Shown in pieces: positions 12,353 through 41,529 of a stretch of DNA of 64,000 nucleotides. The DNA is taken from positions 186,001-250,000 of the forward strand of contig CATNEN010000028.1 of the NCBI GenBank assembly GCA_950097015.1, given 5' to 3'. The notes below the pieces were generated by a model. The model was not told the origin of the DNA and ran no database searches. It saw nothing but the letters and a program-made list of their open reading frames with translations. The DNA comes from Macrostomum hystrix (Eukaryota; Animalia; Platyhelminthes). Position numbers and translations under genes: made by a program. How positions within the stretch are numbered: position 1 is the first letter of the stretch; each line of letters starts with the position of its first letter.

Positions 12353-15300
12353 ATGATGCACCCCACAGTTATAGAAATGGAACTAGATACAACACAACTG
12401 AAGCCGGCAAACAACAGTCCACTGGGCTGCTGCTCAGATGATGGTCGAGTCGTTCTTGCTGATATTTGCAAGGTAATTTAACATGTTTTATTTGTAATTT
12501 AATAACCTGCTTAGCCTGAGGGGGTGAGTGGCAGAGCGGTTAACGCGTTTGCCTCTCGCACCAAGGTCCCTGAGCTCGATTCCGCGGCGAGGCCACATTC
12601 ATTTGGGGCCCAGCCACCGAGAGAAGGCTTGGTGGCTTGTCGTGCAATTTACGCCCTCGAGGGCCAAGCTCCAAGGCACAGTGAAATCTAACACTGACGA
12701 TGAGAAAGTCAGGGCAGATGTACACACCTGCGTGCGTGTGCGCTTAGATTTGCCTCCTCGCTGGCTGCTGGCCTACTTTCGACAAATTATATTCAATTCA
12801 TTACCCGCTTTTTGTACCATTATTATTAATATTATTATTATTATTGTTATTAGAGATTCTTTCTCTCTTTCCGCCTTCTTTCACAGCTAGTCCAGAATGG
12901 ATCAGATGACGAGGCCCTGAATTGCGCTATCAGCCAATGCGACAGCTCATTCTTCAAGACCGACGCCCTTGGCGGACGCCTCATTCACTTGGCTGCCCGC
13001 AATGGCCACTGTGAAGCTACGGCTCTGCTGGCGGATAGGGGCGCCGGTGAGTGATAGTACTGGCCAGGCATTCACAGACACTGGCAGAGCATTCACAGAC
13101 ACACTGGCACAGCATTCACAGACACACTGGCAGAGCATTCACAGACACACTGGCAGAGCATTCACAGACACACTGGCAGAGCATTCACAGACACACTGGC
13201 CAGGCATTCACAGACACACTGGCAGAGCATTCACAGACACACTGGCAGAGCATTCACAGACACACTGGCCAGGCATTCACAGACACACTGGCAGAGCATT
13301 CACAGACACACTGGCACAGCATTCACAGACACACTGGCAGAGCATTCACAGACACACTGGCAGAGCATTCACAGACACACTGGCAGAGCATTCACAGACA
13401 CACTGGCAGAGCATTCACAGACACACTGGCCAGGCATTCACAGACACACTGGCAGAGCATTCACAGACACACTGGCAGAGCATTCACAGACACACTGGCA
13501 GAGCATTCACAGACACACTGGCACAGCATTCACAGACACACTGGCAGAGCATTCACAGACACACTGGCAGAGCATTCACAGACACACTGGCAGAGCATTC
13601 ACAGACACACTGGCCAGGCATTCACAGACACACTGGCAGAGCATTCACAGACACACTGGCAGAGCATTCACAGACACACTGGCCAGGCATTCACAGACAC
13701 ACTGGCAGAGCATTCACAGACACACTGGCAGAGCATTCACAGACACACTGGCAGAGCATTCACAGACACACTGACCAATTGTTCACAGACCTTAACGGCA
13801 CAGACGAAGCCGGATGGACGCCGCTTCATCGCGCCATCGAGGGTGACAGTCCGGCTGTTGTGCGCCAGCTGCTATCGTTGGGTGCCGACTCCGGGACTCT
13901 GGCTCACCATCTGGCACCGATTCACCTGGCCAGCGAGCTCAACCGAGTCGCCTGCCTTCAAGAACTCGATGCCGCCGGCTGCCTCAGTGTGGGCCTGGCA
14001 GGTCGTCACGGTAACACGGCGGTGCACTTTGCCTGCGTTGGTGACGCTGCGGAGGCTCTGACTATGCTGGTGAGGCTATGAGCCGATGCAAAATGCATTG
14101 AAAACTATCCAACACCGAGTTTTTAAATACGAGCGTACGCTCGTAGTGAATTATTTTGCACATTCTGACATGTGCATTTTCACATGCGAAAGCTGATGCG
14201 TTCACAAACTTAGAAGATTTCCCGTACAAAACCCGCCCATTAGCTGCATCGCGGAGGTGATCCGAGCCAGCTAAACCACCTGGGCCAGCAGCCGATTCAC
14301 CTGGCTGCCATGCACGGCAGTTGGCGTTGTCTTGCCATCATAGACACCGCCGCTGGCGGCTCTGACGCCGAAGCTCCGATGCGGCGTCGCGACCGCGACA
14401 ACAATGCGCCGCTTCACCTGGCCATCGGCGCCGGCGACTACCGCACCGTCCGGCTCTGCCTGCAGCTGGGAGCCGACATTGTCGACGATGCCAATGGTCT
14501 AGCGGACTCAGGAACCCCGCTTCACTGCGTCTGTGTGCGAGGCGACCTGCCCGCTCTGCGGCTCATGCTGGAGGAGGGCCGATGCGGCGGCAAGGAAACG
14601 ACGCCACAGGAGAAAGTCGATGCCCTGGAACGCAGAGATAAGAATGGGCACTCACCGCTGCACAAGGCGGTCATGTTTAACCACGTTGAGCTGGTCAGCT
14701 ACCTGCTTGCCAGGGTGAGGGCCTGCCTAATTTGTAAAAGCGAGCCGTCATCGTTGCAGGGAGGGGCGAGTGGCAGAGCTGTCTAGCTCGTTTGCCTCAA
14801 GGACCAAGGTACCTGAGCTCGATTCCGCGGCGAGGCTACATTTATTTGGGGCGCAGCCGCGGAGAGAAGGCTTGGGGGCTTGTCCTGCAATTTACGCCCT
14901 TGAGGGCCAACCTCCAAGGCACAGTGAGAGTGTACACTGCCTGACGATGTGAAAGTCATGGCAGATGTACACACCTGTTTGAGCATGTGCCAGCGTACGG
15001 TATATTTATGTGCGTGTGTGCTCAGGAGTAAGCGAAATGGGCAGAACTGCCTCCTCGCTGGCTGCGGGTCTAGTGTCACCAAACGATGTGCCATTGCCCG
15101 CAGCCCTCCTGCAATTATTATTTTTGTTATCCTCGGAGGGAAAGCTTGGCAAGGTAATTTTCATGCACTGTTTGTGTCACAGGGCGCGGACCCGGAGCTC
15201 AGCGATAGGCAGGGAAACACGGCGCTGCTGCTGGCAGCCAAGACTGGCTCGGTGCACAGCCTGGCCGCACTCGTGACCCGCCGAGACGTCAACATCGCAG

Positions 15301-18300
15301 CCGTGGATCTGGAAGGTCGTAATGCGGCCCACCTGTGCGTGATTCGAGTTGGAGTTGCCGAGGATCGGGCCCTGCTCAGGGTGAGTTCTTGCTCGTCGCA
15401 TTAAATTTTTACTGTTAAATATTGCGGTTGTAGCCTGGTGGTTATGATGTCGAACTCACGACTTGAAGGTCGGTGGTTCGATTTTCGTCTATTTGCTCTC
15501 AGTCGGTTTGGTTCGAGGAGTAACCTCTATTAATATTATTACTGCGAGAAAAACACCATATTTGCATGTCTCGATCATCTAAAGTCACGTAAACTCAAAG
15601 CATCTCAAAACGATGCCCAGATGGGTAAACTGTGCCTATGAAACGCGTCGAAAATCTTCTGATATCACGAACATCTTCGAAGGAGCACGACTTTCACAAG
15701 AATATATCAAGACAACTTAACCAATACAAGACAGTGGGACAATAATCTTGATGCTCTCACCAGAATGTGGCCTGTACCATCTGCAAGCCTATTCTCCTTG
15801 CACGCACTAATCAACAGACCCATCCGCTTGTTTCAGACTCTGCCGATTTCATTGCTAGACCAGAAGGACCTGCACGGCTGCACGCCGCTGCACTACGCCA
15901 CCGCTTCACCATCCAGCCTGGAGCTCCTTATCAGGCGCGGCGCCGCCTGCCTCCCAGCTGATGGCAACCGCGCCACTCCGCTGCACCTAGCCGCCCGCAG
16001 CGGCTCCTTGAACGCCTGCCGGCAGCTCCTGAATGCTTGCTCGCGCCAACTGAACGCCGCAGACTCTCAGGAGAGGACGCCGCTTCATCTGGCTGCGGAG
16101 GCTGGCCACATCCGGGTGGCTCGCTTCCTGCTGGAGAGCGGCTCGGCTCTACGCAGGTACGACAATTGGACAATTGGACTTGAAAAAGCGCGAGGTGAGA
16201 AATTGTTTTCATATCACTGTACGGCCTCAATTTCTGTTCCGTACTCAGAGACTCCCTGGGCAATACCTGCTTGCACTTGGCTGCCAACAACGGGCATCTG
16301 CGCATCATCAAACTCTTGCTCGACGTCAACCGCGCACTCATCGACGCGCAGAATAATGAATTGGTGAGTACATTGCTGTAATTTTCTTAGAAGCTGAACC
16401 TAGATTGTACACTATCGCACTTTGAAGAGTATCGCGCAGTAAAAAGTGACGTCGAAAAGCTTACTGCGACTGAGTCTGCCAAGGACTAAGCCTTTATTAA
16501 CAGGAGAAAGACCAGGCTATTTTTCCATCTGGGGAAAGACAAGGGGTATTTCCCTGATAGCTCCGAAACTGAATGACCGATTTTCGTGAAAGTCCACCAT
16601 TTGGATCAACATTTTCCGCTCTTTACGAAGAACTGACTTTCAAAGCCGTCCGACGTCAGCATCGTCGAGATATTCAACGATTCTTGACGAAGAACCTGGT
16701 GACAAGAAGAAGTAACATTGCTCTGTATAAACTTCTATGACGAATCCATATTGGATCAAAAAAGAAAAAATTTACTATTTAATCGATCTACGAGTAAAAT
16801 TGTTAAACATAATAGCCGACGAGATGATTACATAATGACATTTTTTAGCAGAAAAAATTTGCCTATATTGGTGGTTTTTGCCACCAGACACCCCGACAAG
16901 AATCGTTGAATAACTCGACGATGCCGATGTTTTGTGATTCTGGGAGTTGCTTCATCGGATAGAGCGAAAAATTTTAGCCCGTGTTTTGGATTTTCATGGC
17001 GATCGGTTGAAACTTTTGGAAAATACAGAAAAAAAGAAAAATGTTGGCTTTTGAATTACCCCCATAGTCTTTCTACTGTTTGCCGCATGATTTCAGAAAA
17101 CAGCCTTGCACCTGGCTGCTGTGGCAGGAGCTGTTGATTGTGTTCGACATCTTCTATCTAGCGGCGCTCAGCTCCTGCTGGACAATGAAGGCCGCACCTT
17201 CTTCAGCTGCGCTGTTCGAGCTGGCGAAAAGGCTGTGGTGATGGCGTCCATTGATCACCGATGATCCACGGACATCCTCCTGAGCGTGTCGGTCAGCAGC
17301 TGCCCGATTAAGGAGTGCATTGAGTTCCTTCCCGACTGTGCCAGTGTGAGTGAGGCAGTGTCAGTGAGCCAGTGTGGGTGAGCCAGTGTGGGTGAGCCAG
17401 TGTGGGTGAGCCAGTGTGAGTGAGCCAGTGTGAGTGAGCCAGTGTGAGTGAGGCAGTGTGAGTGAGCCAGTGTGAGTGAACCAGTGTGAGTGAGCCAGTG
17501 TGAGTGAGCCAGTGTGAGTGAACCAGTGTGAGTGAGCCAGTGTGAGTGAGCCAGTGTGAGTGAGGCAGTGTGAGTGAGCCAGCGTGAGTGAGCCAGTGTG
17601 AGTGAGCCAGTGAGTGAGTCAGTGTGAGTGAGCCAGTGTGAGTGAGCCAGCGTGAGTGAGCCAGTGTGAGTGAGCCAGTGTGAGTGAGCCAGTGTGAGTG
17701 AGGCAGTGTGAGTGAGCCAGCGTGAGTGAGCCAGTGTGAGTGAGCCAGTGTGAGTGAGCCAGTGTGAGTGAGCCAGTGTGAGTGAGCCAGGTGAGTGAGC
17801 CAGCGTGAGTGAGCCAGCGTGAGTGAGCCAGTGTGAGTGAGGCAGTGTGAGTGAGCCAGTGTGGGTGAGCCAGTGTGAGTGAGCCAGTGTGAGTGAGGCA
17901 GTGTGAGTGAGCCAGCGTGAGTGAGCCAGCGTGAGTGAGCCAGTGTGAGTGATTCGTGGTCTAATTCAGTAAAAATGATGCTTTCAGATAATTTTGGACC
18001 GGTCCATTGTTGACAGGGGCAGCAAGGTGAGAAAGCTACTGTTCCCCTACGAATCAGCCCAGAGCCTGCAACAGAGCCTCTCGCTCATTCCAGACAGAGC
18101 ACCATTTCTACTTCCTTCAGTTTCCCGTCAGTCAGATTGACCGATACCAGGAAACCACGGGCCGAAAGTACGAATTTTTGCCCGTTATCAACGTGAGTCA
18201 ACACGCCTTTCGGTGTGCTTATTTCTATTAAAAAGCAATCCAATAACAGATTATGAAATCAGTAGTCTCTACTATCCTATTTTATTAAAAAAGTTATTTT

Positions 18301-21300
18301 TTTGCAAATTCATATAATTTCATCTTGCAGTTCATGGTGCGGCTGAACCAAGTTAACTTACTGACGCATCCGCTGTGCGAGGCCTACCTTGCCATGAAGT
18401 GGTGAGCCTGTCAGAGCCTGTCAGTCAGTCAGTCAGTCAGTCAGTCAGTCAGTCAGTCAGTCAGTCAGTCAGTCAGTCAGTCAGCAAACTACCTATCAGG
18501 TAAAGCTTAATTAGATGTATATTTCCTGAGTTTCACAAAGTGTGGATCAAAACAGGTGTGTTTCTGCTCTAGAGCAGCATGAAATTAGTTTCGGAGTAGA
18601 GCAGATATGTAAAACACATTGTAACTTGGAATTCAGTGACCCAGCAAGAAATAGCGATCTTCGATAAACATAATTAATGGTGCTAAGCTGTGCATGCTTA
18701 TCTAACTGTTAGCTAAAAGCCTAACCTCAATTTAATGGTTTAGTCGGTTCACACACTACCATGAGTAATATGAAAGGCACTTTTAGGCCATGGAGTGTCA
18801 AATCTTATGTATTTGAGCTACAGAAATTTTGCCATAAGTTTTATAGGCACGGCGTTCATTAAAAGTAGAAATAAGAGTACCACGGGGATATTTAAAAAGC
18901 AACAATTTTTTCTGTATCTCTATCAAAATATCGCCGTGAAAATGGACTATCACGTACTCACTTATCAATCAATTAATTCTGCTCTACCGCGCATTTTCAC
19001 GAATATTGAAGATAAAATAAAAAATTAACAAAACAGAAACACATCCTTGATCCAGTCTAACTATCGAACATTTATTTGTGTTGTTAGGGATGGCGGGCCC
19101 GCCTCGTAAATTGTTCTACATTGGTGAATTAAAAATGTAATGGCATGGTTATTATTGAGACTGAAATATTTTGTTTCTGGGTTAGTACGATTCGGTCCGG
19201 TCAGTGTCCAGTTCAGCAGCTGGACCTCCGCCTCCTCAGCGCTTGCCAGAGCAGCTGATGTGGCGGTAGATCCTGTAAACCCGGCGGGCGATGCGGTAAA
19301 CCCGCCTCAGCCTGATGCGGATGCGCCGCAGACGGAGCCACTTCTTCTCCAGCTCGGCGGCCTTCTCCTCCGTCATGTCCGGCTCGTCCAGCTCCGCTAG
19401 GTCCTCCAGAGCCGCCATCGAATCCGCGTCCTCCTCCTCCGGCATCTCCTGGCTGGGTCTGGCGGCTGCCAGGGCTGCGCAGAGCAGGAGTCCGAGAGCG
19501 AACTGCCACCGCATGCTTGTGCTGCTGTTTTTGCTTGATGAAGCAGGTTGAGAAGCTGATAGTCTTTGGCTTTTTCTGCTGGCTTGTCGAGTTGCTAGAA
19601 TGTGTCTCGTATTTATGCACAAAAATGGTGCGCGTGTCACGTTCTCCATGTCAAAATATTTTTTCTTGTTTTTCCTACCTCGATTAGAGAATGAAAACAT
19701 TCAGATGCATCTTCCTTTTTGAGAAGTTTTGTTTTTTTTGAGAAAATTACCTTGCACAAGTGTTTTCTCCATTGAGGTCCTTGTGTGAAGGCCAGAAAAG
19801 CTAGTTTTTCCGCTGCGCGATGGTTTCTCAATATTTATTCGCTTAGTTTTTGCACTCCACAAAATTCGGTTAACCTGAATTTCGTTCATAAAGCTTTCCA
19901 TTCAACATTTTTGGCCCACACAACTGGTTGCCGCACAATGTCACCGCCCTCGCATGGGGTGGTGGGTGCTATAGCTCCATGCTTATTGTTCGCCAAGACG
20001 ACTTGACACCTTTTGTTAATATGTTTTGGCCAATTACGAGTATAAAGAAGGATAACTTTATCCTTCGGTGGAAAAAACTGCTTTGAATTTTGATCATTTT
20101 TCCTAGAATTTGGGTTTTTCAAGCTATTTTAGGCAGCCGAGTCAAAGGAAGAAAATCGAAGTCTGACCATCGACAGCTGCTTCGTTTTTTAACCAATGGC
20201 GGTGCACTTCTGAGACTCGAAGGCTAGGTGGCGTGGTACAATGGGTTCAGGACACTGGCAGATAAGAAATGCCGGCCGGTGAACAGGACAGCACTCTCTG
20301 ACCCTGGAAAACTCACAACGCTAAGGAGTGGAGCGGCGGAAGTGAAGCGGAGCGGCGGAAGGTGGGGAGTGGCGGAAGCCAGACAGGCAGATAAGGAGCG
20401 TAGCGGGCTGGGGGGTGGGCGCTCAAACAGAAGCTTAATTTTGACCCGGCATAATTTATGCCTGGCCTTGCAATTGGCTCACGCAAATCATTTGATTTGA
20501 TTTGCAAGTTTTTTTGCTTGCAAATCAGCTGTGCATCGGTAGCTATTGTTGCCATTGTTACCTGTAAGGCTAAGACCCAAAAGCAACCAAAGAAGCAATT
20601 CAAGCGGACTATCTATATAGATACTCTGAATAAAAAACTGAAATTATCTTTTATTATGCTTAACCTCGCGTGTTGACAGCGTAAACTACTGAGCCAAGTA
20701 GGTCAGTAGATTACTTCTACGATCAGAAAATATGAAAGCTGTTCGAACCACCAGAAATTTGAAAGTGGCCAAACACCTAGATCCTAAAATACTAAATGGA
20801 TAAATAATTTAATGCCTATTAAGAGGCCAAATTTGACCCCAAAAAAATTGACACCGGAGTAAAAAAGTATAAAAGTCTGAGAAACTGGTCATAGTTTTTT
20901 ATTTTTAAAAGCAATTAGTCCAAAGCTTTAAGGGTTCTAAAAGAAAAAATTGTGTCCTAAAGCAAAATTACTTAACTCTGCGTTGCTTCATTTCACCCAT
21001 CTGTTAAATGGGTACCAGCATCATCTTGGTTAATCAAGGCTTGGTGTGGCTTCCCCCCAGTCCATGGACTGAACAAAAAGTCCATGGTTACGCAGTCTTC
21101 AGTTGCGCTGGGCGTTAGCAGCGGCTGTACACCTGGCCCAAGTAATTGGCAGGTGTAATAAAGTATTATAGTAGTTCTATTATATACGAGGGGTGTCCAA
21201 AAAGTCTTAGGACCCCACTGCAGTTAAGGAGGCATAACTTTTCAACAGTTAGTGATATTTTCAAAATTCTTTAACTGGTCATTTGTAAATAAAGCCGCTA

Positions 21301-24300
21301 TAAAATAATTTTGTTGTTGTTACTCTTGCTAGCTGTTGAAAAGAGTTATGTGAAAAAGTCCTAAGACTCTTTGGACACCCCTGGTACCTTTGTCCTGACT
21401 CCTATTTTTAGCAAATTTATTCATCTATAAATTATGTCATTTGAATGCGTAAAATCACAAACGCTTGACCAAATGTTTTAACTGCCGTGCAGCTGACCTT
21501 CATAAACTAAGAAGCTCTCTTTGAACAATGTAGGTAAGAAGCTACAACAATGATATGTTGATGTTGATAAACAAGATGAAGCAGAAAACCAGCTCGTTTG
21601 AGTGCCATATTTTGATCTTGACCCTATTTATCATGCACATTGTAGCCAAATGAAACAATGAAAAATGTAGGCACAAACAGCAGTGTTTTCGCCCTGTGTC
21701 GCCCTGCATGTAAGAAATGCATTTGAAAGCCTACACTCATTTTGATAACCGGAAAAACGTGCCCATTTAGTGTATAAATGCGAGATGTGCCGATGCCAGC
21801 TGCAAGCCATGAAGCAACACTTTCAGCTTCTTGATACCAAGGAACTGTGCAGAAACACAAACACAAGCATGCGGTGGCAGTTCGCTCTCGGACTCCTGCT
21901 CTGCGCAGCCCTGGCAGCCGCCAGACCCAGCCAGGAGATGTCGGAGGAGGACGCTGATTCGCTGGCGGCGCTGGAGGCCCTGGCTGACCTGGACGAGTCG
22001 GACATGACGGAGGAGAAGGCCGCGGAGCTGCAGAAGAAGTGGCTGCGAGTCCGCATCAGGTGGAGGCGTGTGTGGCGCATTGCTCGCAGGGTCTACAGGA
22101 TTTATCGCTCCCTGCCTATCCCTGGCAAGTAGGCTGATGCTTCTGAGCCACTGGCACCTGGAAACTGACCGGACTGACTGGGACTCTGAGCCATCAACTC
22201 TGACTCGTGTACAGTATCCCAAGCTTGGGAGGCCTACATGTATGACAGGATATAAAAAAACGACTTTGAGAACAGAGAGGGCTAATATGCGACACAATTA
22301 TGAAGCCAAATTTATAATTTAAATACATCGTTGTCAAACCTTGCGACGGAGAATCGAGTTCTGTTATGAAAGGGTACTTCAATCGCCATAAATAGTTTTT
22401 ATATAGCGCTCAAACGCAGCTACAGTGAGAATTAATGATGTAATAATAATATTTAACAATATTTGGTGACACTGGACCCGCAGCCAGCGAATGAACACTG
22501 GAACCATGAACACTGGACCTCGAATGAACAAAGGAACTCTGCCCATTTCGCTTAAACTTACACACGTACAGGGATACCGTCGCTCACGCAGGCAGTTGCT
22601 CGCACAGATGTTTTGTGTACATCTGCCCTGATTTTCTCATCGTCAGGCAGTGTACACTTTCACTGTGCCTTGGAGGTTGGCCCTCAAGGGTGCAAATTGC
22701 ACGATAAGCCCCCAAGCCTTCTCTTCGCGGCTGCGCCCCAAATGAATGTGGCATAGTGGCCTCGCCGCGGAATCGAGCTCAGGGATCTTGGTGCGAGACG
22801 CAAACGCGTTAGACTGCTCTGCCACTCACCCTGAAGTAATTATGTGCATTTGGTAGAATATAGAAAGCGAAACTCAATACATGGTGCTTGGTCACTGCAG
22901 AAGTCAAGCAATGCCAAGGAGTCCGGTAGATAATGAAGATATTAAATATCTGTTATAGTATTATCTCCGATCACAGCTTACTACTGAACCCAACATATTT
23001 AAATGGGCTACCTATCTATGGGTCTTGACCTTGATGCCAGTCTGAGATTCTATCGGCTGAACACACACGAACACACAAGGTACAATGGTACGACTCACAC
23101 AGGTGTGTACATCTGCCCTGACCCTCTCATCGTCGGGCAGTGTAACACTCACTGTGCATTTGAGGTTGGCCCTGAAGGGCGTAAATTGCGCGGCAAGCCA
23201 CGAAGCCTTCTCTCCGCGTCTGCGCCTCGCTGCAAACTCGATCTCAAGGACAATAGAGCAAAAGGCAGACGCTTTTAAAACTCTACCAAGCACCCATGAA
23301 AGCAGATTTTCGAAGCGAACACGTTCAAGCTCGTTTTTCTACCCGTGTAACAGAGGCTTACTACTTCGTTTTTTTCTCATTGAAAATGATGGACGTGCTT
23401 TTTCTACAGCAATTTTTTACAAATCGAAAGAGTGTAATTGATGCTCTTTTCTCTATAACAAATCTAGCAAAAACTCGTATTCATTGTATATTTTCGAGTT
23501 ACAGATAAAATTACGGGATTATTTTGCATGTCTTTTACGAGAAGATTGGCATTGTACTAATGATTTAGTGGCCCTCAATTTACTTGACATGTCAGCTAAC
23601 TCAAAGATTTTGTTATAAGAGTTCGCAGAGCAAAGACAAGTCGGGGGCGGAGTAATGTCCGGTTGTCCGGTGAAGGCTGGTGAAGGCGGTATCTACTTGC
23701 CAGCGACATGCTTGTAGATCCTGTAGGCGGTCTTGGCGGCGCGCAGCAGCTTCCTAATGCGGATGCGGCGCAGCCGGATGCGGAACTTCTTCTCCACCTC
23801 GGCGGCCTTCTCCTCCGACATGCCCGACTCGTCCAGGTCAGCCAGGGCCTCCAGCGCCGCCAGCGACTCCGCCTCCTCCTCCGACAGCTCCTGGCTGGGC
23901 CTGGCGACTGCCAGAGCTGCGCAGAGCAGGAGTCCGAGAGCAAACTGCCACTTCATGTTTGTTTCGCTGCTGTTGCTTGATGAAGCAGGTAGAGAAGCTG
24001 AGAGTTAGCTTTGGCTCGGAGGTACATACAGCTTTCAGAGGCCTCTGATTTATACACTCGAAAGCGGCACGTTTTTCCGGTCATCGGAATGCGGGGTAAA
24101 AAAAGCACCTTCCACACGCGTTCTCGAAAAAACGCTTCGCACTGAGTTGCTCAGATTGTATCTCGTTTGCTCTTCAGCCGCTCCGTTTGAAAGATAAATT
24201 GCCAGTTGGCCAATAAGGGTGTTGCTGAAGCACTGAGGCTGTGTAATCTGGCATTGAACCTGCAGTTATTGAAATTGCATCTTCAGATGCAATTAACTAT

Positions 24301-27300
24301 CTTCATTTGGCCAGTCTGTTCTTAAGTCCGCCCAGACCTTCGAGAGTTCAAGCTCAGCAACCCTTGTAGAGAGAACAATGGGACATTCTAACAGATTGAA
24401 TGCATTTTCGGCCAAAACTGTTTCAGAACTGCAGCTGTTGGTTTGAGAAGGCAGAGATTTTTTTCTCGCTTTATGTTTAACCCGCTTATTTAGTGCCTGA
24501 CGACATTGCACTCACCTTATGTGAAATATACTTTGCGTGAATCGAATTCAGTTAACCCGATGTTTTGAGCTGAAATCTAGTTTTTTTACTCATACGAGCT
24601 CGTATTTTGCCTATTGCAAATAGATTATTTCAAAAAGGGCTATTTTGTGATGAGCACAGTGAGCTGGTCAGATTATTGGTGCGCAGCTGGACTCTGAATT
24701 TCGTCAGACCGGCCACTCCGGGCGGAACCGCGGGTTTCTGGGTCTTGTATCTGCCTGGTGGGATAGCCTTCTTCTCTTGCCGAGCGGATGGCTTCTCTAA
24801 CTACGAACTCATCGATCAGTGGGTTGTCTGTGAATGACGGGGCTCTACAGGATGACTCTGCATGGCGTGTGTTTTAGAACGGCCAGATTTGGTGAAGCTT
24901 CGACTCCCGTGCAAGGACCACTATGAGTAGAACTTCTACTCCTAGTGGTGGTCCTTGCTCCCATGCTGGGTGGTAGGCATTGACTTCACCCGCGATTCGT
25001 GCCGCCTGCTGAGATAGGAGGTCCTTCAGGCTCTGGATATATCCAGACGGGCAGCTACTTTCAGGTGGCGCGTAGAAATGGTGCACCTGCAGCGGCGGTT
25101 GGCAATTAAGCTGCGAGAATCTGATAGGAGTGGTGGAACAGGCCGTAATAAGGGCCGCCGCCGGCGTGGTTGTTGGCGCTTCGATCCTTTCTTAGCGTGG
25201 CATAGTTGGAGAAGGCTGATTACTGATTTGCTGGTAGGGTTTCAGCTTGTTCTTGAATTGTCGCCACTTTAATTTTGTTGGCGTCTATAAAGGCTTCGGT
25301 CTGTTTGTTTCGGACACCATAGCAGTTCCATTGCAGAATAGAGAACTCCGGCACTGGCTTTGAGTCAATGTCGCCAGCTCTAATAGGAAGTATGCAGGAG
25401 AGCACGGCGGGTCGGCTTGTGCCTCTCGCAATTCAAAAACCTGACTCTGTTCCGATACTGTTCCCGATGGGAGAAATTTGTGTCTACTTGCAGCTGTTCC
25501 GGAGATCTGCTGGCACTTCCACCACGAGCAGGCGGACTCTTCAGAAGCATCAACAACAGGTATTGGTGAAACCGTTTGACGGCGAAGGCGATCGCAAGAG
25601 CCTTCTTCTCAATCTCCGAAAAGCGTCTTTGAAGCTATTCGATAGCGTCTTCGAGGTTCTCCAGAATCTTCTCAAGCTGTCTGCTGTCTCCTGCCGGCGC
25701 CTGGTTGATCTGAAAAGCGAACAGATTCGACCAGTTCAGTCGCACTTTCTCCAACCAGTTGCGACCTAGCCGGCGGCAGGAGCCCGTGAGATGTTGAGCA
25801 TGAGTCATGATGAGAGGCTTAACTTTGATTTGCAGGTACACGCTGATCTTCTTGACGTTCGCCATGATGTATGAAGTGTATTAGAAATAATTCTCCAATA
25901 GGTCGCGAATTTGGCCTCAAAGTGATGTGGAGTGTGCTGCGGGAATCGAGTGGGAGTGTGAGCCAGCATAATTTTTCAAATTTTTAAGTGTCTAATAATT
26001 GCGACCCACGTAGCAGCTGGCCGCAAACACGATCATTAATCTTAGGGCCGGGTTTGAGGCGGCGGTGAATCAAGTAGCTGTCGAATCCTCTCTCTCCGGA
26101 GTTGTCTAGACTCCCCGTAGGAATGACTGATCGCGGCCATAATGTTACTGTATGAACTAGTTTAGGTCATAATTCCCCTCCAAACCGCGATCAGATATAG
26201 GGGCTCACTCGCGCGTTATGAGTGATCATTAAATTCTTCATGTCCCCTCTTCTTTACAGTAGTCGAGCCCAGCTCGACTTTATGACCTCCCTCCTTTAGA
26301 TACATGTAAATGTCACTGTAGGCAGGTCGGCGCCTGCGCTTCCCATTGTCCCGGCGGAGTAACAATCGCTGGCTGACTGCCGACGGCTGTTCGCGCAGAA
26401 CATCTGTCGTTTCCCGCCGCCGGTTCATTGGGCAATTGGGGCGGCAATCGCCGCTTCAATTCCTCGATGACAGGCTGGCGCGAATGTGGGTTGCTTTGAT
26501 GGATGTCGGGGTTGGCGTGCTGCAAGGCCTATTTAAGCAAGCGCGCTGCGCTGCTCCCTCTTGGACCGTTTTCTCCCGCCGGCTCTTCCCCTTCTCCCCC
26601 GCCGGACTTACCTAAGCCGGGCCGGACTCCCACCGGACCCAGAGCACTATTCCCGACCACGTAGGGCTTAGACCCTTGAGCCTTGAGCTCCGAGCAGATA
26701 AGCACAGGCCAATTGCCTGTTCCCATTCCCTAAGCGCAAGCCACCTCTTAGGTGAGCTCTAAATTGAGCCTTTGAGCTCCCAGTGCGTTGGCCCCTGCCA
26801 ACTCGCAGAAGTTTCCTTCCTCTGTCTTACTGCTTTGCCCATTCCTTTCTCCCCGAGAACAACGGGACTGCAGCACGCGGCCAAACGAGACCCAGCTAAG
26901 TAATCCGCGCAGCGGTTTGTTATTGTTAATCCTAAGGGACAATTTTACTTTTAGTTTAGGCGGCATTTAGTGGGAGGGGAGTTAGGGAAGTTTTCAGCCT
27001 AATAAAACCACTTAATCTAAAGCACCTTTAACTTATTGGGCTAATTTTTAACATCAACCTAATTTTTACTATGTCTCCTTTTCACCTTTATTTTCTCATT
27101 AGACAGCCCTCTACCATGAGTGGCTAATCTATTAGGGGGATGGGCTCTGGCACAGCCGAGCTGAAAGCTGCGGCAGGAAGGCGATTGTGAGCGCGCATGA
27201 GAGTAATATGGAGCTAGGGATTTGTAAGTAAATGCGGAGGGTAGCATGTGCATTTTCCTTTCCAGGGGGTTGGGGGAATCCTTGGCCGGTTTTCCTTCTC

Positions 27301-30300
27301 CCTCTTGGGTGGGTTCAAGGTACGTGTCGAGCTCCCTTTCCAATGGAGTTTTCCCGCTGTCCCCCTTTCGCACCTGCGGCCACGGGAACGAGAGTGATGT
27401 TCAATTAATCTCACGCTTGCATAATCACTCAGCCAGTGTTCAGCTTAACCTCTCCTGCCTCTGTTTTCCTCAACTCGCACAGACTCGGATTGCTAGTTAT
27501 CTAATGTGTAGGCTGCAGTCTAATGTACCGAATGTGTCTGATGTTTCATGAGTAGGATTCTGGCTATGGATTTCTCTTTCGGGTTCGGAGTACCACCTTT
27601 CTAGACCACTGTAGCGCAAATTCAGGAATCCCCTGGTGAGGCGTGTCTCGATCCATTCTGGGGTCTTCACCCTAGTCTAAAACGGAAGTTACAGAAGGCT
27701 CTATTTTTTCGGCTTGTCTAAGATCTGTGTGACAAACTAGGAGCCGCGAGCTCCGGGGACCCAAGTTTCCAAATGTCTGCGGTGGCAACGCAGGCGCATT
27801 GGGTGGTGGCGCTACCCTAGATCATTTTCCGCTTTGCCGATAGCCTTTCCGCATTTCTAAGACAAGAGCCTAGGCCGAGTCGACCACTGCTACCAAGTTT
27901 AGGAGTCAGTTACGAACATGCTACTGATGACAGTAGGCTACCTAGCCCTGTCCTATCCGCTTGCGGGTAGTCCGACATCTATTTAGACTTTTAGCCGGTT
28001 TCGAGCACTGCTTGGGGTAGGCACGGCAGTCATGCCTGTGGCCTATGGGTTGAGTGGGACTGGCCAGCCTGAGGCCGAGAGGACCACTCCCTGCATCCAC
28101 TGTCTCTCCCTTCATCTCTGCCTTCATCCCTCTTTCCGCGGCAACTCGCGAGCCTTTGCGGTATGACTTCCGACTCTATCGCCATCCCCACACTCCTTTC
28201 CTTCACGAGGACAGATCATCGGATTGCAAACCCGCAGCTATTTCAAAAGTAGGATTTGTGGGTTTTGTTGCCCTTGTCAAATTGGTGCTTTGGCAGTTAA
28301 GCATCACTTCGATGTTGATCTTTGCACTTTAGTCGGGACGGGAAAGTATAGTTATCAATATTTACAGGGGCCAATTAACATTGTCGGGCATGAGACAACT
28401 CAGAATTAGGAAAACCACCCTCCTTTACAATGTGTAGAAGAGACACTCGAGAGAAGAAACAGGAAGCTTTAAGAAACTCTGCCCTTTTTGCTATAGCTAC
28501 TTACATTTTCGGATCATTGATTTCAAACTTCTCTACTGTGGCCAGCAGCAAACTAAAGTACCCAATTTATGCGACACTTAGTTGAAATCGATAGAAATAC
28601 ACTTCTACAGTGCACAACACCGTTCTCTAAATGTTCCGAAAGGTGGCTGCGACTGCTAGGTAATTAGCAAGGCTAAAAAACCAAGCCTTGGCAATGCTAA
28701 CTAAATGCGGGGCACAGTTTATCTCGCCCTCCAAAATACAGTGCACCGTTTTAGAGTTTTTGGACAATGGTCGAATTCGCCAACCTGAGCATTTTAAGCC
28801 CATATCTATTTTACAGTTCAATGCATTTCAATACAAAGGCCAATTTGAGCTCGCACTCACAAAGGCCAAGGGCACGTGGAAGATGCTTTTTTGTACCCCG
28901 CCATTCTGATGACCGGAAAAACGTGCAAACTTGGAATGTATAAATCAGAGGCCTCTGAAAGCTGTATGTACCTCCAAGCCAAAGCTAACTCTCAGCTTCT
29001 CTACTTGCTTCATCAAGCAACAGCAGCGAAACAAACATGAAGTGGCAGTTTGGTCTCGGACTCCTGCTCTGCGCAGCTCTGGCAGTCGCCAGGCCCAGCC
29101 AGGAGCTGTCGGAGGAGGATGCGGAGTCGCTGGCGGCGCTGGAGGCCCTGGCTGACCTGGACGAGTCGGGCATGTCGGAGGAGAAGGCCGCCGAGGTGGA
29201 GAAGAAGTTCCGCATCCGGCTGCGCCGCATCCGCATCAGGTGGAGGCACGTGTTGCGCGTCGCCAACACGGCTTTCAGGATTATCCGCAAGCTGCCTATT
29301 GGCAAGTAGGTGCTTCTCTGCAGAACCTGGCCACGGACCTGGACTCGCCCACGATGTGTTCCTATGCTATTGAGCAGAGAACTGATTGCGTGTTAAAATT
29401 TCAGCAGCAGCTGGCCGATTTGTTTAGCTTTAAAATACTCGTATGGCCGTACGTATCGGCCATGGTTTTAAATGTAAGCTCCACGCAAATAATCATTCAA
29501 ACTGAACTGTTGCGGTGGCCCGATTTTTCATAAATTGCCTGAACGACCTTGCACGGTTGGAATCAGACTGGCTATACCATTAGAATAATGAGTGAGTCGA
29601 CGGCGCAATTGTGTCTAGCAATTACACCTAGTCACCAAAAGAAGGAGGAGAGGCATTGAAACCCCTTCACTGAGGTATCAATGAGCGAAGCAATAAGAGC
29701 ATCGCCAAACATAAGCCAAGATTAGGCTGTCAGGCGCAAGTCTAGTGTAGGTGAGCAATGTTCAAATACCGATCGCATGATAATTGCCAAATTTGTCAAT
29801 AAAAGCTCATTTGATTATGGCACAATCAGTTTTGTCTTTTATGAGGATGTGAAACACTAATTTAGCGTTTCTAACGTGGCGTTTCTTTTCAGTAGGATGT
29901 CCTCATTTTGAAATTCTATGGCCAAACTTCATATAACTGGTATATAATTATACGATATAACTGGCTTCAAAACGAGGTCAATTATACGAATCATTTGTAT
30001 TTCAGCAGAATTTAACGAGAAGGAACAAGTAGTAAAACGCTGCGTAGAAGCACCAGAAAGTTTTTTAGAAGAATGCATATTGTCACGCACTCACTCCCTA
30101 AGTAGTCACTCCCATGTAATGGTCACGATGTTGCCGTTGGCAATTCGAGATGCTCGTTGGCGTCCTCAGGCTTGGCGACCATAGCCTTGGTGATGCTATG
30201 CAGCGTCCTGGAGATGTGTACATGGTCACGTGAGTCCAGGGTTATAAACTCGTATCTCTCAACAGCACTGCTGGAGTGACTCGTGATCCGTGCAATGTCA

Positions 30301-33300
30301 CTGCATTGGACACCAGCTTGGTGCATGGTGGTAGCGCAGGTCTTGCGAAGCGACTGGTTTGTGAACCTGCCCGAATCCTCATGACCAGCCGTCAGAGTCT
30401 TGACAATCCCGTCTAGTGTGTGGCGCCCCAGTGGAGCATTCTGAAACCACTTTCCTGCTTGAATTGCTTTCTCACACCGGTAGTAGCTCAGGAAAAGATA
30501 GGTCAAGCTGCATTCCTCAGGACGCTTAGCGTCATACGTCTTATACAGGCACACCAGGCAACGTTCGTGGCTGGGTGTATGGTACGAGCGAATCTCACGG
30601 GACGGGCCACGCTTCATTTTCAGTCCTCGATTGTTTGTCTTGGTGGCCCTCTGTTCCGTGAACAGTAGACATTCGCCTTGTACATCCGTGCGGAGAACGA
30701 TGTCTGTTGTGTTCTAGAGAATGTAGTTCAGATCCGCCACGAAGTGCGAAGTTCTTTGCAACGTAAAAAATGACCGTGAACACCAATTGCTTTGGTGTCG
30801 CCTGGCCAAGGACACCACTTTGCCACAACTTTACTTCAACGTCCTGGCCGATAAGCTGGCTCGCTCTCCGGCCTGGAATGTTGCCATCCCGCACAGTTTC
30901 CTTCATTGCGGCATCCAGAGCCAGCCTTGCTTCGGAGAGGGGGGTGAGTGGAAGAGCGGTTAACGCGTTTGCCTCTCGCACCACGGTCCCTAAGTTCGAT
31001 TCCACGGCGAGGCCACATTTATTTGGGGCGCAGCCGCGGAGAGAAGGCTTTGGGGCTTGTCGTGCAATTGACGCCCTACAGTTGAAGCTGGTACCCATTT
31101 AACAGCTGGGTGAACTGAAGCAATGCAGGCTTAAGTGTCTTGCTGATGGACAAAACTTGCTCCAGTGGATTTCGGGAATCGAACCCCTACTTTCGAATCG
31201 TGAGTCCGAATGGGTCTGATGCTCAAAACACTATGCTACAAGCCCTACTAAACTACTCGTACATAGGCAACCCCTGCTAGGCTACTGCACTCCCTGATTG
31301 AAGTGCACAAAATACAAGCTTAAATATTTAATTCAACGATGCTGATGGCTAGGCCACGTATGTGCTAGTACCTCTACTGAGAACTACTTTTCTGAAAAGA
31401 TTCTTTCGCATCTCACACCTGAATAGCCCCATTCATTAAAGTAATATGTGTTACAGTGGCAAGCACTGCATGAGGACTTGAACGCACCCATCTATACACT
31501 CTTGTGTGTGCTTTTGTGCTCATGCAGTGCAATGAGAGCGAATTGTGCATTGCAACTTATTCAATAAAGTAAGCACAATGCTTGCCATTCTGGTCGCAGT
31601 TAGCAAAAGGTTTACAAAGATTTAAGCAGCGAACTTGCCATATAAAATTTCATTAAGACCTACAATAGACAGCTCGAACGCCTGCGCCAGTCCGTTTAGC
31701 CTCTCTCTTGCTTGACTAGAACCGTGACTCCTAAACTGTAGCAGCAGTGACACGAGCATGCGGTGGCAGTTGGCTCTCGGACTCCTGCTCTGCGCAGCTC
31801 TGGCAGCCGCCAGACCCAGCCAGGAGATGTCGGAGGAGGATGCAGAGTCTCTGCAGGCCCTTGAGGCCCTGTCAGACCTGGACGAGTCTGACGTGGCTGT
31901 TGAGAAGGCCGCCGAGCTGGAGAAGAAGTGGCGACAGCACAAAGTTCGCCTCCGCCTTAGACGGCTCATGAGCTTGGCCGCCAGCCTCTACTGGGCGAGG
32001 GTCAAGGGCTGATGCTGCTGTTGAACACGGACCTGCATTGACTCAACTCAAACTCTCCACTGATTATCGAATAATATTTTCTCGCCTGCGTCTGAAATAT
32101 AATAACGAACACTGGCTGGAAATAGAAAATTTTAGTCCTTAGTCTTTACATAATATTTTATTATTTTAGGCGAGAAAATATATTGTAAAAGCGACTGCTA
32201 TACACAGCGAATATTCTTGTTCTCGTGCATAATTTTGCTCTTAAAGCTAGCTCACACTGCCATTGTGCGGCAAAAACACAATTCTGCATTTTTTATCGAG
32301 TTAACGATCAAACAATTGTGCACAAAACACTTTATTTCATTGCAGCTTAAGCCTTTACATTTACAGTAAAAATCCATCCAAATATCAAAACCAATCAATC
32401 AACCCTCGATAAAGCAAAGCTAATGTACGTGCAGCTCGTAATAAAATCAGAAAACTTTTATTTTTAGGTTTCGCTACGGCCGCTGGATTCACAATGCGAA
32501 CATCTGCGTTTACACATTGTTCTTAGCGGCGCTGACATCATTTGTGTGGCTGCTGTCCTCCACATTGCACATTGACGACAACAGCATCGCTGAGCTTTGC
32601 TCATTCAGGGTAGGGCTTTGAACACGCTATGTTCCCTGGGGAAAGAGCACGCTATGTTCCCTGGGGAAAGAGCACGCTATGTTCCCTGGGGAAAGACCAT
32701 GCTATGTTCCCTGGGGAAAGACCACGCCATGTTCCTTGGGGAAAGACCACGCTATTTTCCCTGGGGAAAGACCATGCTATGTTCCCTGGGGAAAGAGCAC
32801 GCTATGTTCCTTGGGGAAAGACCACGCTATGTTCCCTGGGGAAAGACCATGCTATGTTCCCTGGGGAAAGAGCACGCTATGTTCCCTGGGGAAAGAGCAC
32901 GCTATGTTCCCTGGGGAAAGAGCACGCTATGTTCCCTGGGGAAAGAGCACGCTATGTTCCCTGGGGAAAGAGCACGCTATGTTCCCTGGGGAAAGACCAC
33001 GCTATGTTCCCTGGGAAAAGACCATGCTATGTTCCCTGGGGAAAGACCACGCTATGTTCCTTGGGGAAAGACCACGCTATTTTCCCTGGGGAAAGACCAT
33101 GCTATGTTCCCTGGGGAAAGACCATGCTATGTTCCCTGGGAAAAGACCATGCTATGTTCCCTGGGGAAAGAGCACGCTATGTTCCTTGGGGAAAGACCAC
33201 GCTATGTTCCCTGGGGAAAGACCATGCTATGTTCCCTGGGGAAAGAGCATGCTATGTTCCCTGGGGAAAGACCATGCTATGTTCCCTGGGGAAAGAGCAC

Positions 33301-36300
33301 GCTATGTTCCCTGGTGAAAGACCACGCTATGTTCCCTGGGAAAAGACCATGCTATGTTCCCTGGGGAAAGACCACGCTATGTTCCTTGGGGAAAGACCAC
33401 GCTATTTTCCCTGGGGAAAGACCATGCTATGTTCCCTGGGGAAAGACCATGCTATGTTCCCTGGGGAAAGAGCACGCTATGTTCCTTGGGGAAAGACCAC
33501 GCTATGTTTCCTGGGGAAAGACCATGCTATGTTCCCTGGGGAAAGAGCACGCTATGTTCCCTGGGGAAAGAGCACGCTATGTTCCCTGGGGAAAGAGCAC
33601 GCTATGTTCCCTGGGGAAAGAGCACGCTATGTTCCCTGGGGAAAGAGCACGCTATGTTCCCTGGGAAAAGACCACGCTATGTTCCCTGGGAAAAGACCAT
33701 GCTATGTTCCCTGGGGAAAGACCACGCTATGTTCCCTGGGGAAAGACCACGCTATGTTCCCTGGGGAAAGACCACGCTATGTTCCCTGGGGAAAGACCAC
33801 GCTATGTTCCCTGGGGAAAAAGCATGCTATGTTCCCTGGGAAAAGACCACGCTATGTTCCCTGGGAAAAGACCACGCTATGTTCCCTGGGGAAAGAGCAC
33901 GCTATGTTCCCTGGGAAAAGACCACGCTATGTTCCCTGGGAAAAGACCACGCTATGTTCCCTGGGGAAAGAGCACGCTATGTTCTAAGGAAGAAAAAATG
34001 GTTGGCATTTGAAATACCCCCGTGATCTTTTTACTGTTAAATAAAGCAACCATTTTATGCAGATTACTAGGAATATTGGTCTGATAAAAAACAAACTTTT
34101 TAACCGAAAGACTGCCAAAATCCTACGTCTTGTCCTTCAGTATTACAAGCAGAGCGATCCTGTTGCCTACAACGCCAAAATGTACCTGCCTGTCGTTCTA
34201 ATTAGTGCGTTCTCCATTTTGAATCTGCTCAAAGAACTACTGCAGATTGTGCAACAGGTTTGAAATAGACATTTCCTTGTTATTTTCGGGAATGTCAGAA
34301 TGAATCCATGTGCGTAATAAACTTCAATTTCAGAGACTGCGGTACTTCAAGGATCTCATCAACTACTTGGAACTGGTTCTCTACAGCAGTTCCCTGGCAT
34401 TTGTGTTCCCTTTTTACCTGGGCCATTCGATGGACATCCAGTGGAAGTGCGGCTCGGTAGCCATTCTACTCGCGTGGATCAACTTCCTGATGTTCTTCCA
34501 ACGGTTGGTGTTGTTTGAAATTGCGCTTTATAAACTGTCCTAATTGAGCGATCTCCTATTTTAGATACAAGCTCACTGGCATCTATGTGGTGATGTTCCA
34601 GCGAATCGCCAAAACACTATTCAAGGTGATCGCTGTATTCTCACTTCTGATTGTGGGTTTCGGATTAGCCTTCTATATTCTCTTGCAGTACAATCCATCG
34701 CAATCGTTGGAACAACTAAAACACGTGAGGTTCCCAGAGTGTTACTTTTAAGAGTTTTCGTGTCGCGTACTGTTAAACTACTATCAAAACAACAATAGCC
34801 GAAATAGGACGAGAAAAGTATTTTTTTAAGCTTTCGCTTCTCACACGCCTTTGAAACTAAATTTTAGAGCAATGAATCGCAGGGCGACATTCCGAAGTTT
34901 ACAAAAATTTATTCGGTAAGGTGCGAATAGCAGTGTCTTTAATTATCCTCCAGCGCAGACAATTGCTCTTTGACGAAGACATAACAAGTTCACGTGCGGA
35001 CAAGCTCGCCGCTTAGTTCGACAATTATAAATTTCAGAATGAGCAATGGTGTAGCGGTATAATATAGTGCAAATTCTAATGGCAAACCTGTAATGGTCAA
35101 TGGGTGTGGAGTTTAAGATTAGTGTACTCTGAACTTAATATAGATTAATCATATGTATATTTCTAATTAGTCTAGTATGGTTCAACACGAAACTCGATCT
35201 AGCCTTGAGCTGATTTGGATATTTATCGTAAGCCGGTGTAACACTAGCTGTACAGGTAAGGCCGACTAGGGCAGAGAGTGTAACTAAGTCAGTACTTGTA
35301 AGCAATTTAAATCTATTTAAATTTAATTCTTAAATTTAAAGATACAAAGCTAAATAAAATCGAAAAATACTGGAATAAAGAAAAAACTACAATAAGAATA
35401 AATGTGTTTATCACAATATAGAAAATAAAACAATAAACACAATACCATTAACTACAATTTACCGTAAATAGCAAACATCTATATCATCATAGCTCTCTTC
35501 AACTATCCGTAAGGTCATGCGTGAACTCGACAAGAGTCAAATTGCGACAAGTGGCCCTGAACTGGTTGACAATGTCACCGAATACATGGCACAGTGCTTT
35601 CCAGCCAGGTACAGTTTGAAACAGCCACTGGATAGAAATGTGGCTCTTGAAGCTTGGAATGATCCGCTGCTGGCCATTGTCAAGACCAGCCTGATGATGA
35701 TTGGCGAGATCGACTATGTGGGCACCTTCCTCAGTACAATGCTGGACGGTGACACGCGGACAAATCACCACGATTGGTTCAGCCTGCTTCTGCTGCTACT
35801 GTTTGTTGCTCTGATGCCCATATTGCTCATCAATCTTATGGTGAGTAGATGGCATATCTTGTGTACAGCTGTTCAGTCCGAGGACTAGTGGCCACTATAA
35901 AACGCTCGAATTCCTACCTCACTTAATTATCAGTTAAATGCTGAGCGAACTGAATGAATCAGGAATTAAGTGTATTGCTCATGGACACTCCCTAGGATGA
36001 GATTCGAACGGATATTTACTCTCGAACCAAGGTCCCTGAGCTCAATTCCGCAATTCCGCGGCGAGGCCACATTCATTTTGGAACGCACAAGTCGAGAGAA
36101 GGCTTGGCGGCTTGTCGTGCAATTTACGCCACTGAGTGCCAACCTCCAAGGCACAGTGAGGGTGTACACTGCCTGACGATAGAAAAGTATCCGTATCCCT
36201 GCCGAATGGGCAGAATTGCATCCTCGCTGGTTGCGGTTTAACTATCGCTAAATTATGGGTCTATACTAAGCCCCAGTAAATTATTTTTTTATAATTGAGA

Positions 36301-41230: not shown

Positions 41231-41529
41231 CACAAAATCCCTACCCATTCAAAAGCCCCACTAAATACGAGTACTAACTGATTAATAATTGAGATGGTTT
41301 GCGCTTAGTTAAAGTAGGTTGTTGAGAAAAATACGTCCGAAAATTATTATACTTACTAAATTTTCTTCCTGTAAAATTCTTGCTTATCTACATTTTAGCT
41401 TATCATGGTATTTGGTTAGGTTGTAAAAAATTAAATCAATAAAATATAATCTGCTAATTACCGACTCGCTTTCAGTTTCCTAATGTATTGTTGCAACTGG
41501 TGACTCTGAAACCAATCAGGATATGCAGT

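Follow-up and report, generated by a model that had tools for sequence, protein, structure and literature searches.

A five-gene cluster in Macrostomum hystrix encoding precursors of arginine-rich, predicted amidated peptides with a candidate role in defence

Introduction

The antimicrobial peptides (AMPs) of frog skin are encoded as precursors of the FSAP/dermaseptin family (PF03032), in which a signal peptide and an acidic pro-piece precede a dibasic site and a cationic, often amidated peptide. They belong to a multigene family whose cargos have diverged much further than the prepro region, synonymous sites included, and unrelated cargos can follow the same prepro cassette. The arminins and periculins of Hydra are also taxon-restricted multigene families, with a highly cationic C-terminal peptide that follows a signal peptide and an anionic N-terminal part. 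Here, we describe five paralogous genes with this layout on a 64-kb stretch of the genome of the flatworm Macrostomum hystrix (contig CATNEN010000028.1, positions 186,001 to 250,000; hereafter the window). With moderate confidence, we read them as coding for convertase-processed, amidated, membrane-active defence or cytolytic peptides.

An initial annotation of the window, made from the sequence alone, had likened these precursors to those of dermaseptins and arminins. The architecture does match, but homology to either was not detected: hmmscan gave no match to PF03032 for the five proteins (E up to 10) or for eight relatives (E up to 1), and a family profile run against 1.84 billion representative proteins found no arminin, a family whose processing and amidation differ or are not established. 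As there is no sequence homology to the frog family, and the phyla are different, the likeness to it is probably convergent. The Macrostomum precursors also differ from those of frogs in their dibasic site, which is KK rather than KR, and in a cargo that is much richer in arginine. When clusters are compared by language-model features, those of frog AMP precursors (bombinin, dermaseptin, brevinin and temporin) come closest, with scores of 0.71-0.74, a likeness that lies below the level of evidence and is given as a lead only.

Further parallels exist in mammals and molluscs. The linear cathelicidin peptides SMAP-29 and BMAP-27/28 resemble the Macrostomum peptides in their length of 26-31 amino acids (aa), their high arginine content, an amphipathic helix, which in Macrostomum is a prediction, and a C-terminal Gly for amidation, and PR-39 and Bac5/7 resemble the Pro/Arg-repeat paralogue P0006 of Macrostomum lignano; both likenesses are leads only. 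However, the Macrostomum precursors have no cathelin pro-domain with its four Cys, their pro-piece being short, acidic, Cys-free and without a Pfam match, and release would be by a convertase and not by elastase. Conotoxin superfamilies share a conserved signal and pro region, a mature region diverged even at synonymous sites and clustered, duplicated genes, whereas the Macrostomum cargos are linear with no or one Cys and their orthologues are under purifying selection. In myticalins the signal peptide is followed by the cationic peptide and then by an anionic C-terminal extension, whereas in Macrostomum the anionic part precedes the cationic peptide; myticalins are not found in flatworms (Irvine et al. 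2023, PMC10414684). The same survey, the main text of which does not mention Macrostomum, reports that flatworms are without the classical lophotrochozoan AMP families. A lineage-specific AMP family is therefore plausible in flatworms, whose AMP repertoire is undescribed, and the cluster is a concrete candidate for the missing arsenal.

Results

Five precursors share one architecture

All five open reading frames (ORFs) were confirmed in the ORF listing of the window, with coordinates and strands exactly as first annotated (Table 1). When each of the products was searched against the whole window with tblastn, exactly five loci were returned (E 1e-28 to 1e-58, with mutual matches of 1e-28 to 1e-41), and no sixth paralogue rose above noise in the 64 kb. 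The ORFs had been described as intronless. In agreement with this, RNA contigs of copies 2 and 3 are colinear with the genome from the coding sequence (CDS) into the 3′ untranslated region (UTR).

The proposed order of signal peptide, acidic pro-piece, dibasic site, cationic peptide and Gly end is visible in the protein alignment of all five copies. The signal peptide comprises 18 almost invariant residues, reading M-R/K-W-Q, then a hydrophobic core, then A-x-A before R-P; as read from the sequence, it has one basic residue and a 15-residue hydrophobic core. It is followed by an acidic, Cys-free pro-piece of 39-40 aa that ends in KAAE(L/V)(E/Q)KK. The computed charge of the pro-piece is -12 in copy 1, which does balance the +12 of its mature part as first suggested, and -9 in copies 2-5. 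The mature parts likewise fall within the originally estimated range of about +8 to +12 over 26-31 aa.

The Gly-type end (G, GK or GKR) is kept throughout the five copies, while the residues before it vary from copy to copy and never end in RF. Across the family, an end of the type G, GK, GKR or KKG is present in 16 of the 19 members inspected, despite differing preceding residues. Variable residues before a near-universal Gly end are strong indirect evidence for the predicted C-terminal amidation.

The family is transcribed

Three RNA-type runs and one DNA run were compared over positions 18900-24300. The DNA run covers the whole interval at approximately 80x, whereas the other three cover only gene bodies and repeats and thus behave as RNA. 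RNA-type runs contain 0.27-0.58 of the words of 21700-22400, the region of copy 2, and 0.57-0.63 of the words of 28950-29500, the region of copy 4. The initial annotation had called for transcripts as a check, and these were found for three of the copies. Copy 2 is matched by an RNA contig at 21977-22358 with zero mismatches, at low depth. Contigs at 23515-23786, also with zero mismatches and with word depths of 480 and 1314, span the mature part of copy 3 and approximately 178 nt of its 3′ UTR. For copy 4, a 686-nt RNA contig of depth 425 joins the shared pro-piece to sequence agreeing with the mature part of this copy. Copies 2, 3 and 4 are therefore transcribed. For copy 1, RNA depth is confined to the bin 19262-19442 in two of the three RNA runs and may come from words common to the paralogues. 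Depths of 5,000-46,000 are seen for words from the conserved signal and pro-piece, but these words are shared among paralogues and their depth is a poor gauge of expression; the family is abundantly represented in RNA, and nothing more is claimed from the depth of shared words.

Transcripts of the family occur in seven different samples. Nine RNA libraries per species were made by Brand et al. 2020, namely three each from adults, hatchlings and regenerants. If the RNA runs, which date from 2020, are those libraries, at least one of the seven positive samples would be a hatchling library, without gonads.

An unnamed family, apparently confined to Macrostomum

The initial annotation recognised no named family in these sequences, and the database searches bear this out. 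A Pfam-A hmmscan of the five proteins (E up to 10) and of eight relatives (E up to 1) returned no family, and the mature part of copy 1 had no match among PDB sequences at E up to 10. A word-seeded search yielded four M. lignano 'hypothetical proteins'. The profile search that had been put forward as a way to find a described family was run with nine members against the 1.84 billion representative proteins and returned 11 clusters only, with no relative outside Macrostomum. Every named cluster among the 11 is from M. lignano, annotated either as 'hypothetical' or, in a chimeric model, as 'Sushi domain-containing', and one of the 11 comes from a 2024 run; a second word-seeded profile search added one mis-modelled member, 'SERPIN domain-containing'. 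Full-text literature on the peptide motifs, the M. lignano gene identifiers and Macrostomum AMPs or immunity contained nothing describing the family, and the gene identifiers were not found in the available parts of the supplements of Grudniewska 2018 and Wiberg 2023. For copies 1, 3 and 5, public assemblies contain no record of the exact protein. On these searches, the family appears to be unnamed and confined to Macrostomum. It had not, however, gone entirely unseen, as the idea of a newly found family would imply: M. lignano members were already deposited as 'hypothetical proteins', and one had been used as an in situ probe.

The same signal peptide and acidic pro-piece carries widely different cargos in M. 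lignano and a relative. The cargo of P0006 consists of Pro/Arg repeats of the RVRLPR type, that of P0008 is a two-Cys peptide, and those of P0007 and P0012 are Arg-rich and 24-27 aa long. In P0009, P0010, P0011 and P0014 the cargo is only 7-10 aa, with basic residues or His alternating with hydrophobic ones and a Gly end, and the cargo of P0013 is non-cationic. The architecture is kept across at least two species and approximately ten subfamilies. With unrelated cargos on a shared prepro region, a single function for all members of the superfamily is not assured. Members with a short cargo (7 aa, His-rich, with an amidation signal) lie in tandem on M. lignano contig NIVC01000619 (L005 6907-7140 and 10001-10234), and several further superfamily members are found on the same 208-kb contig.

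Paralogues diverge, orthologues are conserved

A comparable five-member cluster is present on M. lignano contig NIVC01001664. Three of its members are intact, and the other two carry an in-frame stop and a frame shift, respectively. The two broken-looking members lie at L001 16757-17007 and 26086-26354. The deposited model P0001 fuses two intact copies that are 27 kb apart into one 139-aa protein, and P0005 is a family member joined to a Sushi-domain protein. Between the window and the M. lignano assembly Mlig_3_7, coding regions are approximately 83% identical and the flanks do not align.

Within the window, the signal and pro-piece of the five paralogues are nearly identical at the DNA level and the mature part is diverged, and the flanks cannot be aligned except for the promoter and 5′ UTR. 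Both kinds of site are more diverged in the mature region (pooled pS 0.44, pN 0.33) than in the prepro region (pooled pS 0.17, pN 0.08). The dN/dS of the prepro region is well below 1, and that of the paralogous mature parts ranges from 0.25 to 1.08 (pooled 0.75), exceeding 1 in one pair only. Comparison with M. lignano gives a different picture. The mature part of copy 1 shares 27 of 33 residues with the gene at L001:18340-18627 (dN/dS 0.21), that of copy 2 shares 24 of 29 with the L002 gene (dN/dS 0.21), and that of copy 4 shares 23 of 33 with the gene at L001:37055 (dN/dS 0.29). Overall, the mature parts of the best orthologue pairs are 70-83% identical with dN/dS of 0.21-0.29. The description of the mature peptides as hypervariable was thus overstated: they have diverged between paralogues but are conserved between orthologues. 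Conservation of orthologous cargos between the species suggests that the individual paralogues are functional units under constraint. Positive selection on the cargo was considered and is not supported, with a pooled dN/dS of 0.75 for paralogues and values of 0.2-0.3 for orthologues. A single Cys and the GKR tail are common to copy 1 and its M. lignano orthologue; this lone Cys near the C-terminus could allow disulfide-linked dimers.

Copies 3 and 4 are arranged head to head, approximately 5 kb apart (23693-24081 on the reverse strand and 28912-29309 on the forward strand). They are near-identical in promoter, 5′ UTR, prepro region (2 differences in 171 nt) and the first 11 codons of the cargo, after which the sequences diverge abruptly, and the 3′ UTRs cannot be aligned. 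This pattern suggests gene conversion or a partial inverted duplication.

Promoters

A TATA-like box lies 96-117 nt upstream of the ATG in all five copies (Table 1). In copies 2, 3 and 4 it is preceded, approximately 10 nt further upstream, by the 16-nt motif ACCGGAAAAACGTGCC. There are 3 matches to this motif in the window against 0.4 expected, and all three are at the promoters of copies 2-4. Its 13-nt core is also found at the same distance upstream of a family gene in M. lignano (L002 9868-9880 and L003 3089-3101), and a looser version is present in a contig from another sequencing run. The motif may be a putative binding site that sets the tissue or induction pattern. As far as the sequence allows, the five genes appear to be independent and TATA-driven, each with its CDS in a single exon.

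Table 1. Positions of the five peptide genes and of their promoter elements in the window.
Feature	Positions	Strand	Description
Copy 1	19236-19514	-	ORF; 92-aa precursor, mature part ~31 aa, charge +12, one Cys near end, GKR tail
Copy 2	21869-22132	+	ORF; 87-aa precursor, mature part 28 aa, charge +10, GK tail
Copy 3 CDS and ~178 nt of 3′ UTR	23515-23956 (CDS 23693-23956)	-	ORF and RNA contigs; 87-aa precursor, mature part 28 aa, charge +11, GK tail
Copy 4	29037-29309	+	ORF; 90-aa precursor, mature part 31 aa, charge +11, GK tail
Copy 5	31758-32012	+	ORF; 84-aa precursor, most divergent copy, mature part 26 aa, charge +8, ends directly in G
Copy 1 TATA-like box CATAAAT	19611-19617	-	103 nt upstream of ATG
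Copy 2 promoter module, ACCGGAAAAACGTGCC then TATAAAT	21748-21779 (motif 21748-21763)	+	TATAAAT 96 nt upstream of ATG
Copy 3 promoter module, ACCGGAAAAACGTGCC and TATAAAT	24048-24081 (motif 24066-24081)	-	TATAAAT 98 nt upstream of ATG
Copy 4 promoter module, motif with one mismatch then TATAAAT	28912-28945 (motif 28912-28927)	+	TATAAAT 98 nt upstream of ATG
Copy 5 TATA-like box TATAAAA	31641-31647	+	117 nt upstream of ATG

Predicted structure and physicochemistry

AlphaFold2, run on a shallow family alignment (mean pLDDT 66), predicts a helix each for the signal and the pro-piece, and a single long helix that extends from the end of the pro-piece through the entire cargo (pLDDT 75-86). For copies 1 and 2, the maximum of the hydrophobic moment (0.68-0.71) falls at 105-110 degrees. 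A closer inspection by halves reveals that in the N-terminal half of all copies R alternates with I/L/V/W and the moment peaks at 140-180 degrees, which is beta-like, and that the C-terminal half of copies 1-4 has a helix-like moment of 0.65-0.79. As judged from their sequences, the peptides are cationic and probably amphipathic, with the net positive charge and large hydrophobic share of linear cationic amphipathic AMPs.

Tissue distribution in M. lignano

One member of the family has been localised. In Table S11 of Brand et al. 2020, the in situ probe RNA815_1838.3 carries the score 'gonads', with reference to Ramm et al. 2019; the probe is 364 nt long, derives from a transcript of 501 nt and is mapped to Mlig001477.g4, the gene of P0001. 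The primers of this probe were found at L001:9977-10000 and 10320-10340, exactly 364 bp apart, bracketing the family member at L001:10001-10267. A member of the family has therefore already been examined, anonymously, as a socially sensitive gene. The probe spans the conserved prepro region, such that cross-hybridisation with paralogues is possible. The positional RNA-seq data of Arbore et al. 2015 contain 93, 94, 49 and 176 reads of this probe's transcript for the head-only, plus-testis, plus-ovary and whole-worm samples, respectively, and class it as 0,0,0, i.e. not region-specific. From the 93 head-only reads and this class, the transcript appears to be as abundant in the gonad-free fragment. 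It is absent from the available part of the germline/neoblast table of Grudniewska et al. 2018.

Discussion

Proposed function and alternatives

Under the favoured reading as secreted defence or cytolytic peptides, the N-terminal signal peptide, recognisable from its residues, would send the precursor into the secretory pathway, and the acidic, partly helical pro-piece may neutralise the basic cargo during transport and storage; the charge balance itself is computed from the sequence. A prohormone-convertase-type enzyme would then cleave after the KK, a carboxypeptidase would remove the terminal K/R and peptidylglycine alpha-amidating monooxygenase would convert the exposed Gly to an amide; these steps are suggested by the Gly ends together with established knowledge of such enzymes. 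The freed peptide of 26-31 aa, probably amphipathic, charged at +8 to +12 and rich in R and in I/L/V/W/Y, would be expected from its physicochemistry and by analogy to bind and permeabilise anionic membranes. It may serve as an effector in host defence or cytolysis, and may guard gametes or eggs besides the body, if the analogy with frog, Hydra and mammalian peptides extends to function.

Several observations weigh against this proposal. The cationic part of the precursors contains internal RR and RxRR sites at which a convertase could cut too, and the final products may, by such cleavage, be shorter than 26-31 aa. When compared with shuffled sequences, helical amphipathicity is borderline in copies 1, 2 and 4 (p 0.05-0.2, with 0.05-0.09 for the helical moment) and not significant in copies 3 and 5. 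The 7-10 aa cargos and the one non-cationic cargo of the superfamily are unlike classical AMPs, and the low dN/dS of the orthologues amounts to less divergence than a pathogen arms race predicts. Moreover, the sole published localisation is to the gonads, from a screen for socially sensitive genes, and not to epidermis, gut or immune tissue. The periculin of Hydra is supplied by the female germline and protects embryos, and a comparable role would reconcile the gonad pattern with defence.

The gonad signal, obtained with a probe whose primers bracket a family member, could instead mean that these are reproductive peptides, secreted from the gonads and acting on gametes, eggs or the mating partner (in sperm or egg function, or in sexual conflict) and not primarily on microbes. 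Lineage-restricted multigene families are typical of reproductive proteins. We nonetheless consider this unlikely: the transcript is as plentiful in positional RNA-seq where gonads are lacking, it does not appear in the available part of the germline/neoblast table, the probe may have cross-hybridised through the prepro region, and the orthologues are conserved, unlike fast-evolving reproductive genes. Purifying selection on the orthologues would fit precursors of neuropeptides or hormones, in which the amidated peptide, or shorter pieces released at the internal RR sites, would signal through receptors. The combination of signal peptide, dibasic cleavage and C-terminal Gly amidation is the layout of a prohormone, and the M. 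lignano relatives P0010, P0011 and P0014 carry 7-10 aa cargos with amidation signals. However, the C-terminal residues, normally the receptor-binding and most conserved part of such peptides, differ in all five copies, and in none of these is there the amidated RFamide-type motif that flatworm FLP and NPF precursors share. There is also one cargo per precursor, a charge of +8 to +12 over 26-31 aa is atypical, and the M. lignano member has no head enrichment (Arbore et al. 2015). A signalling role is accordingly improbable.

The equal and opposite charges within one precursor could also serve a secretion material, with the Arg-rich peptide and its acidic partner forming coacervates or beta-sheet assemblies in mucus, rhabdite-type granules, eggshell or adhesive. 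Expression along the whole body axis (Arbore et al. 2015) would suit such a role. So would the alternation of basic and hydrophobic residues in the N-terminal halves, with their moment peak at 140-180 degrees, and in the short cargos of the relatives, which favours beta-sheet self-assembly. Amidation signals and precise dibasic processing would, however, be unusual in bulk structural material, the peptides are very small and the known adhesive proteins of Macrostomum are large, and we see little prospect for this explanation. Least of all do we expect the ORFs to be young, lineage-specific sequences that are transcribed but untranslated or non-functional. The genes are supported at the DNA and RNA level, and the M. 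lignano cluster contains two broken copies, as such an origin would allow; but five intact ORFs, an architecture kept in at least two species and approximately ten subfamilies, low dN/dS values (far under 1) for both the prepro region and the orthologous cargos, and a conserved promoter module make it very improbable.

Membrane-active defence or cytolytic peptides thus remain the reading we prefer for the five genes. For the superfamily as a whole, we tentatively suggest something broader, which we hold to be possible though doubtful: the prepro region may be a Macrostomum-specific cassette and the main peptide-effector arsenal of the genus, exporting helical Arg-rich, Pro/Arg-repeat and very short alternating amidated peptides, with some members deposited in the gonads to protect gametes or eggs and responsive to social conditions or mating. 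If so, the strategy of frog skin and Hydra would have been invented independently in an animal that is amenable to transgenesis and RNA interference (RNAi). Irrespective of this, a shared prepro cassette with diverse cargos is a new independent case of secreted-peptide diversification, in which the 5′ half is conserved, the 3′ half has diverged and gene conversion is probable. Should the lead to the gonads and to social sensitivity hold, it would link mating and immunity in a hermaphrodite. The peptides are also new Arg-rich templates, and function is directly testable because RNAi, transgenesis and in situ methods exist in Macrostomum. The architecture is of a known kind and new AMP-like families are found fairly often; the family itself appears to be new and unnamed, yet its genes were already deposited as hypothetical proteins.

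Genomic surroundings

A TRPA1-like gene spans the cluster, with exons within 13900-17264 and 35517-36715 on the forward strand and all five peptide genes, on both strands, between them. Its ankyrin-repeat exons lie at 14310-17264 (Pfam Ank), and the exon at 35517-35888 matches the pore/S6 region of solved TRPA1 structures. Nesting within TRPA1 is not supported as a conserved feature, as neither ankyrin nor TRPA1 exons could be detected next to the cluster of M. lignano. A protocadherin gene adjoins the peptide cluster in both species (6879-10428 on the reverse strand of the window; L001 43442-44965 in M. lignano). However, as a case for shared synteny this is weak: the two protocadherins are 41-56% identical, far below the peptide genes, and may be paralogues.

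Mobile-element remnants lie among the peptide genes. Between copies 4 and 5 there is a pair of ORFs of the DUF3504/tyrosine-recombinase (Crypton-like) type at 30123-31098 on the reverse strand, and between copies 3 and 4 an ORF at 25220-25405, also on the reverse strand, resembles by eye the N-terminal endonuclease of a non-LTR retrotransposon. Long minisatellite arrays that are open in several frames occupy 12969-14081, 32597-34025, 41472-45241 and 46032-49444. The first of these runs straight into an ankyrin-repeat exon, and the array at 46-49 kb has a strong GC skew of -0.3 to -0.5.

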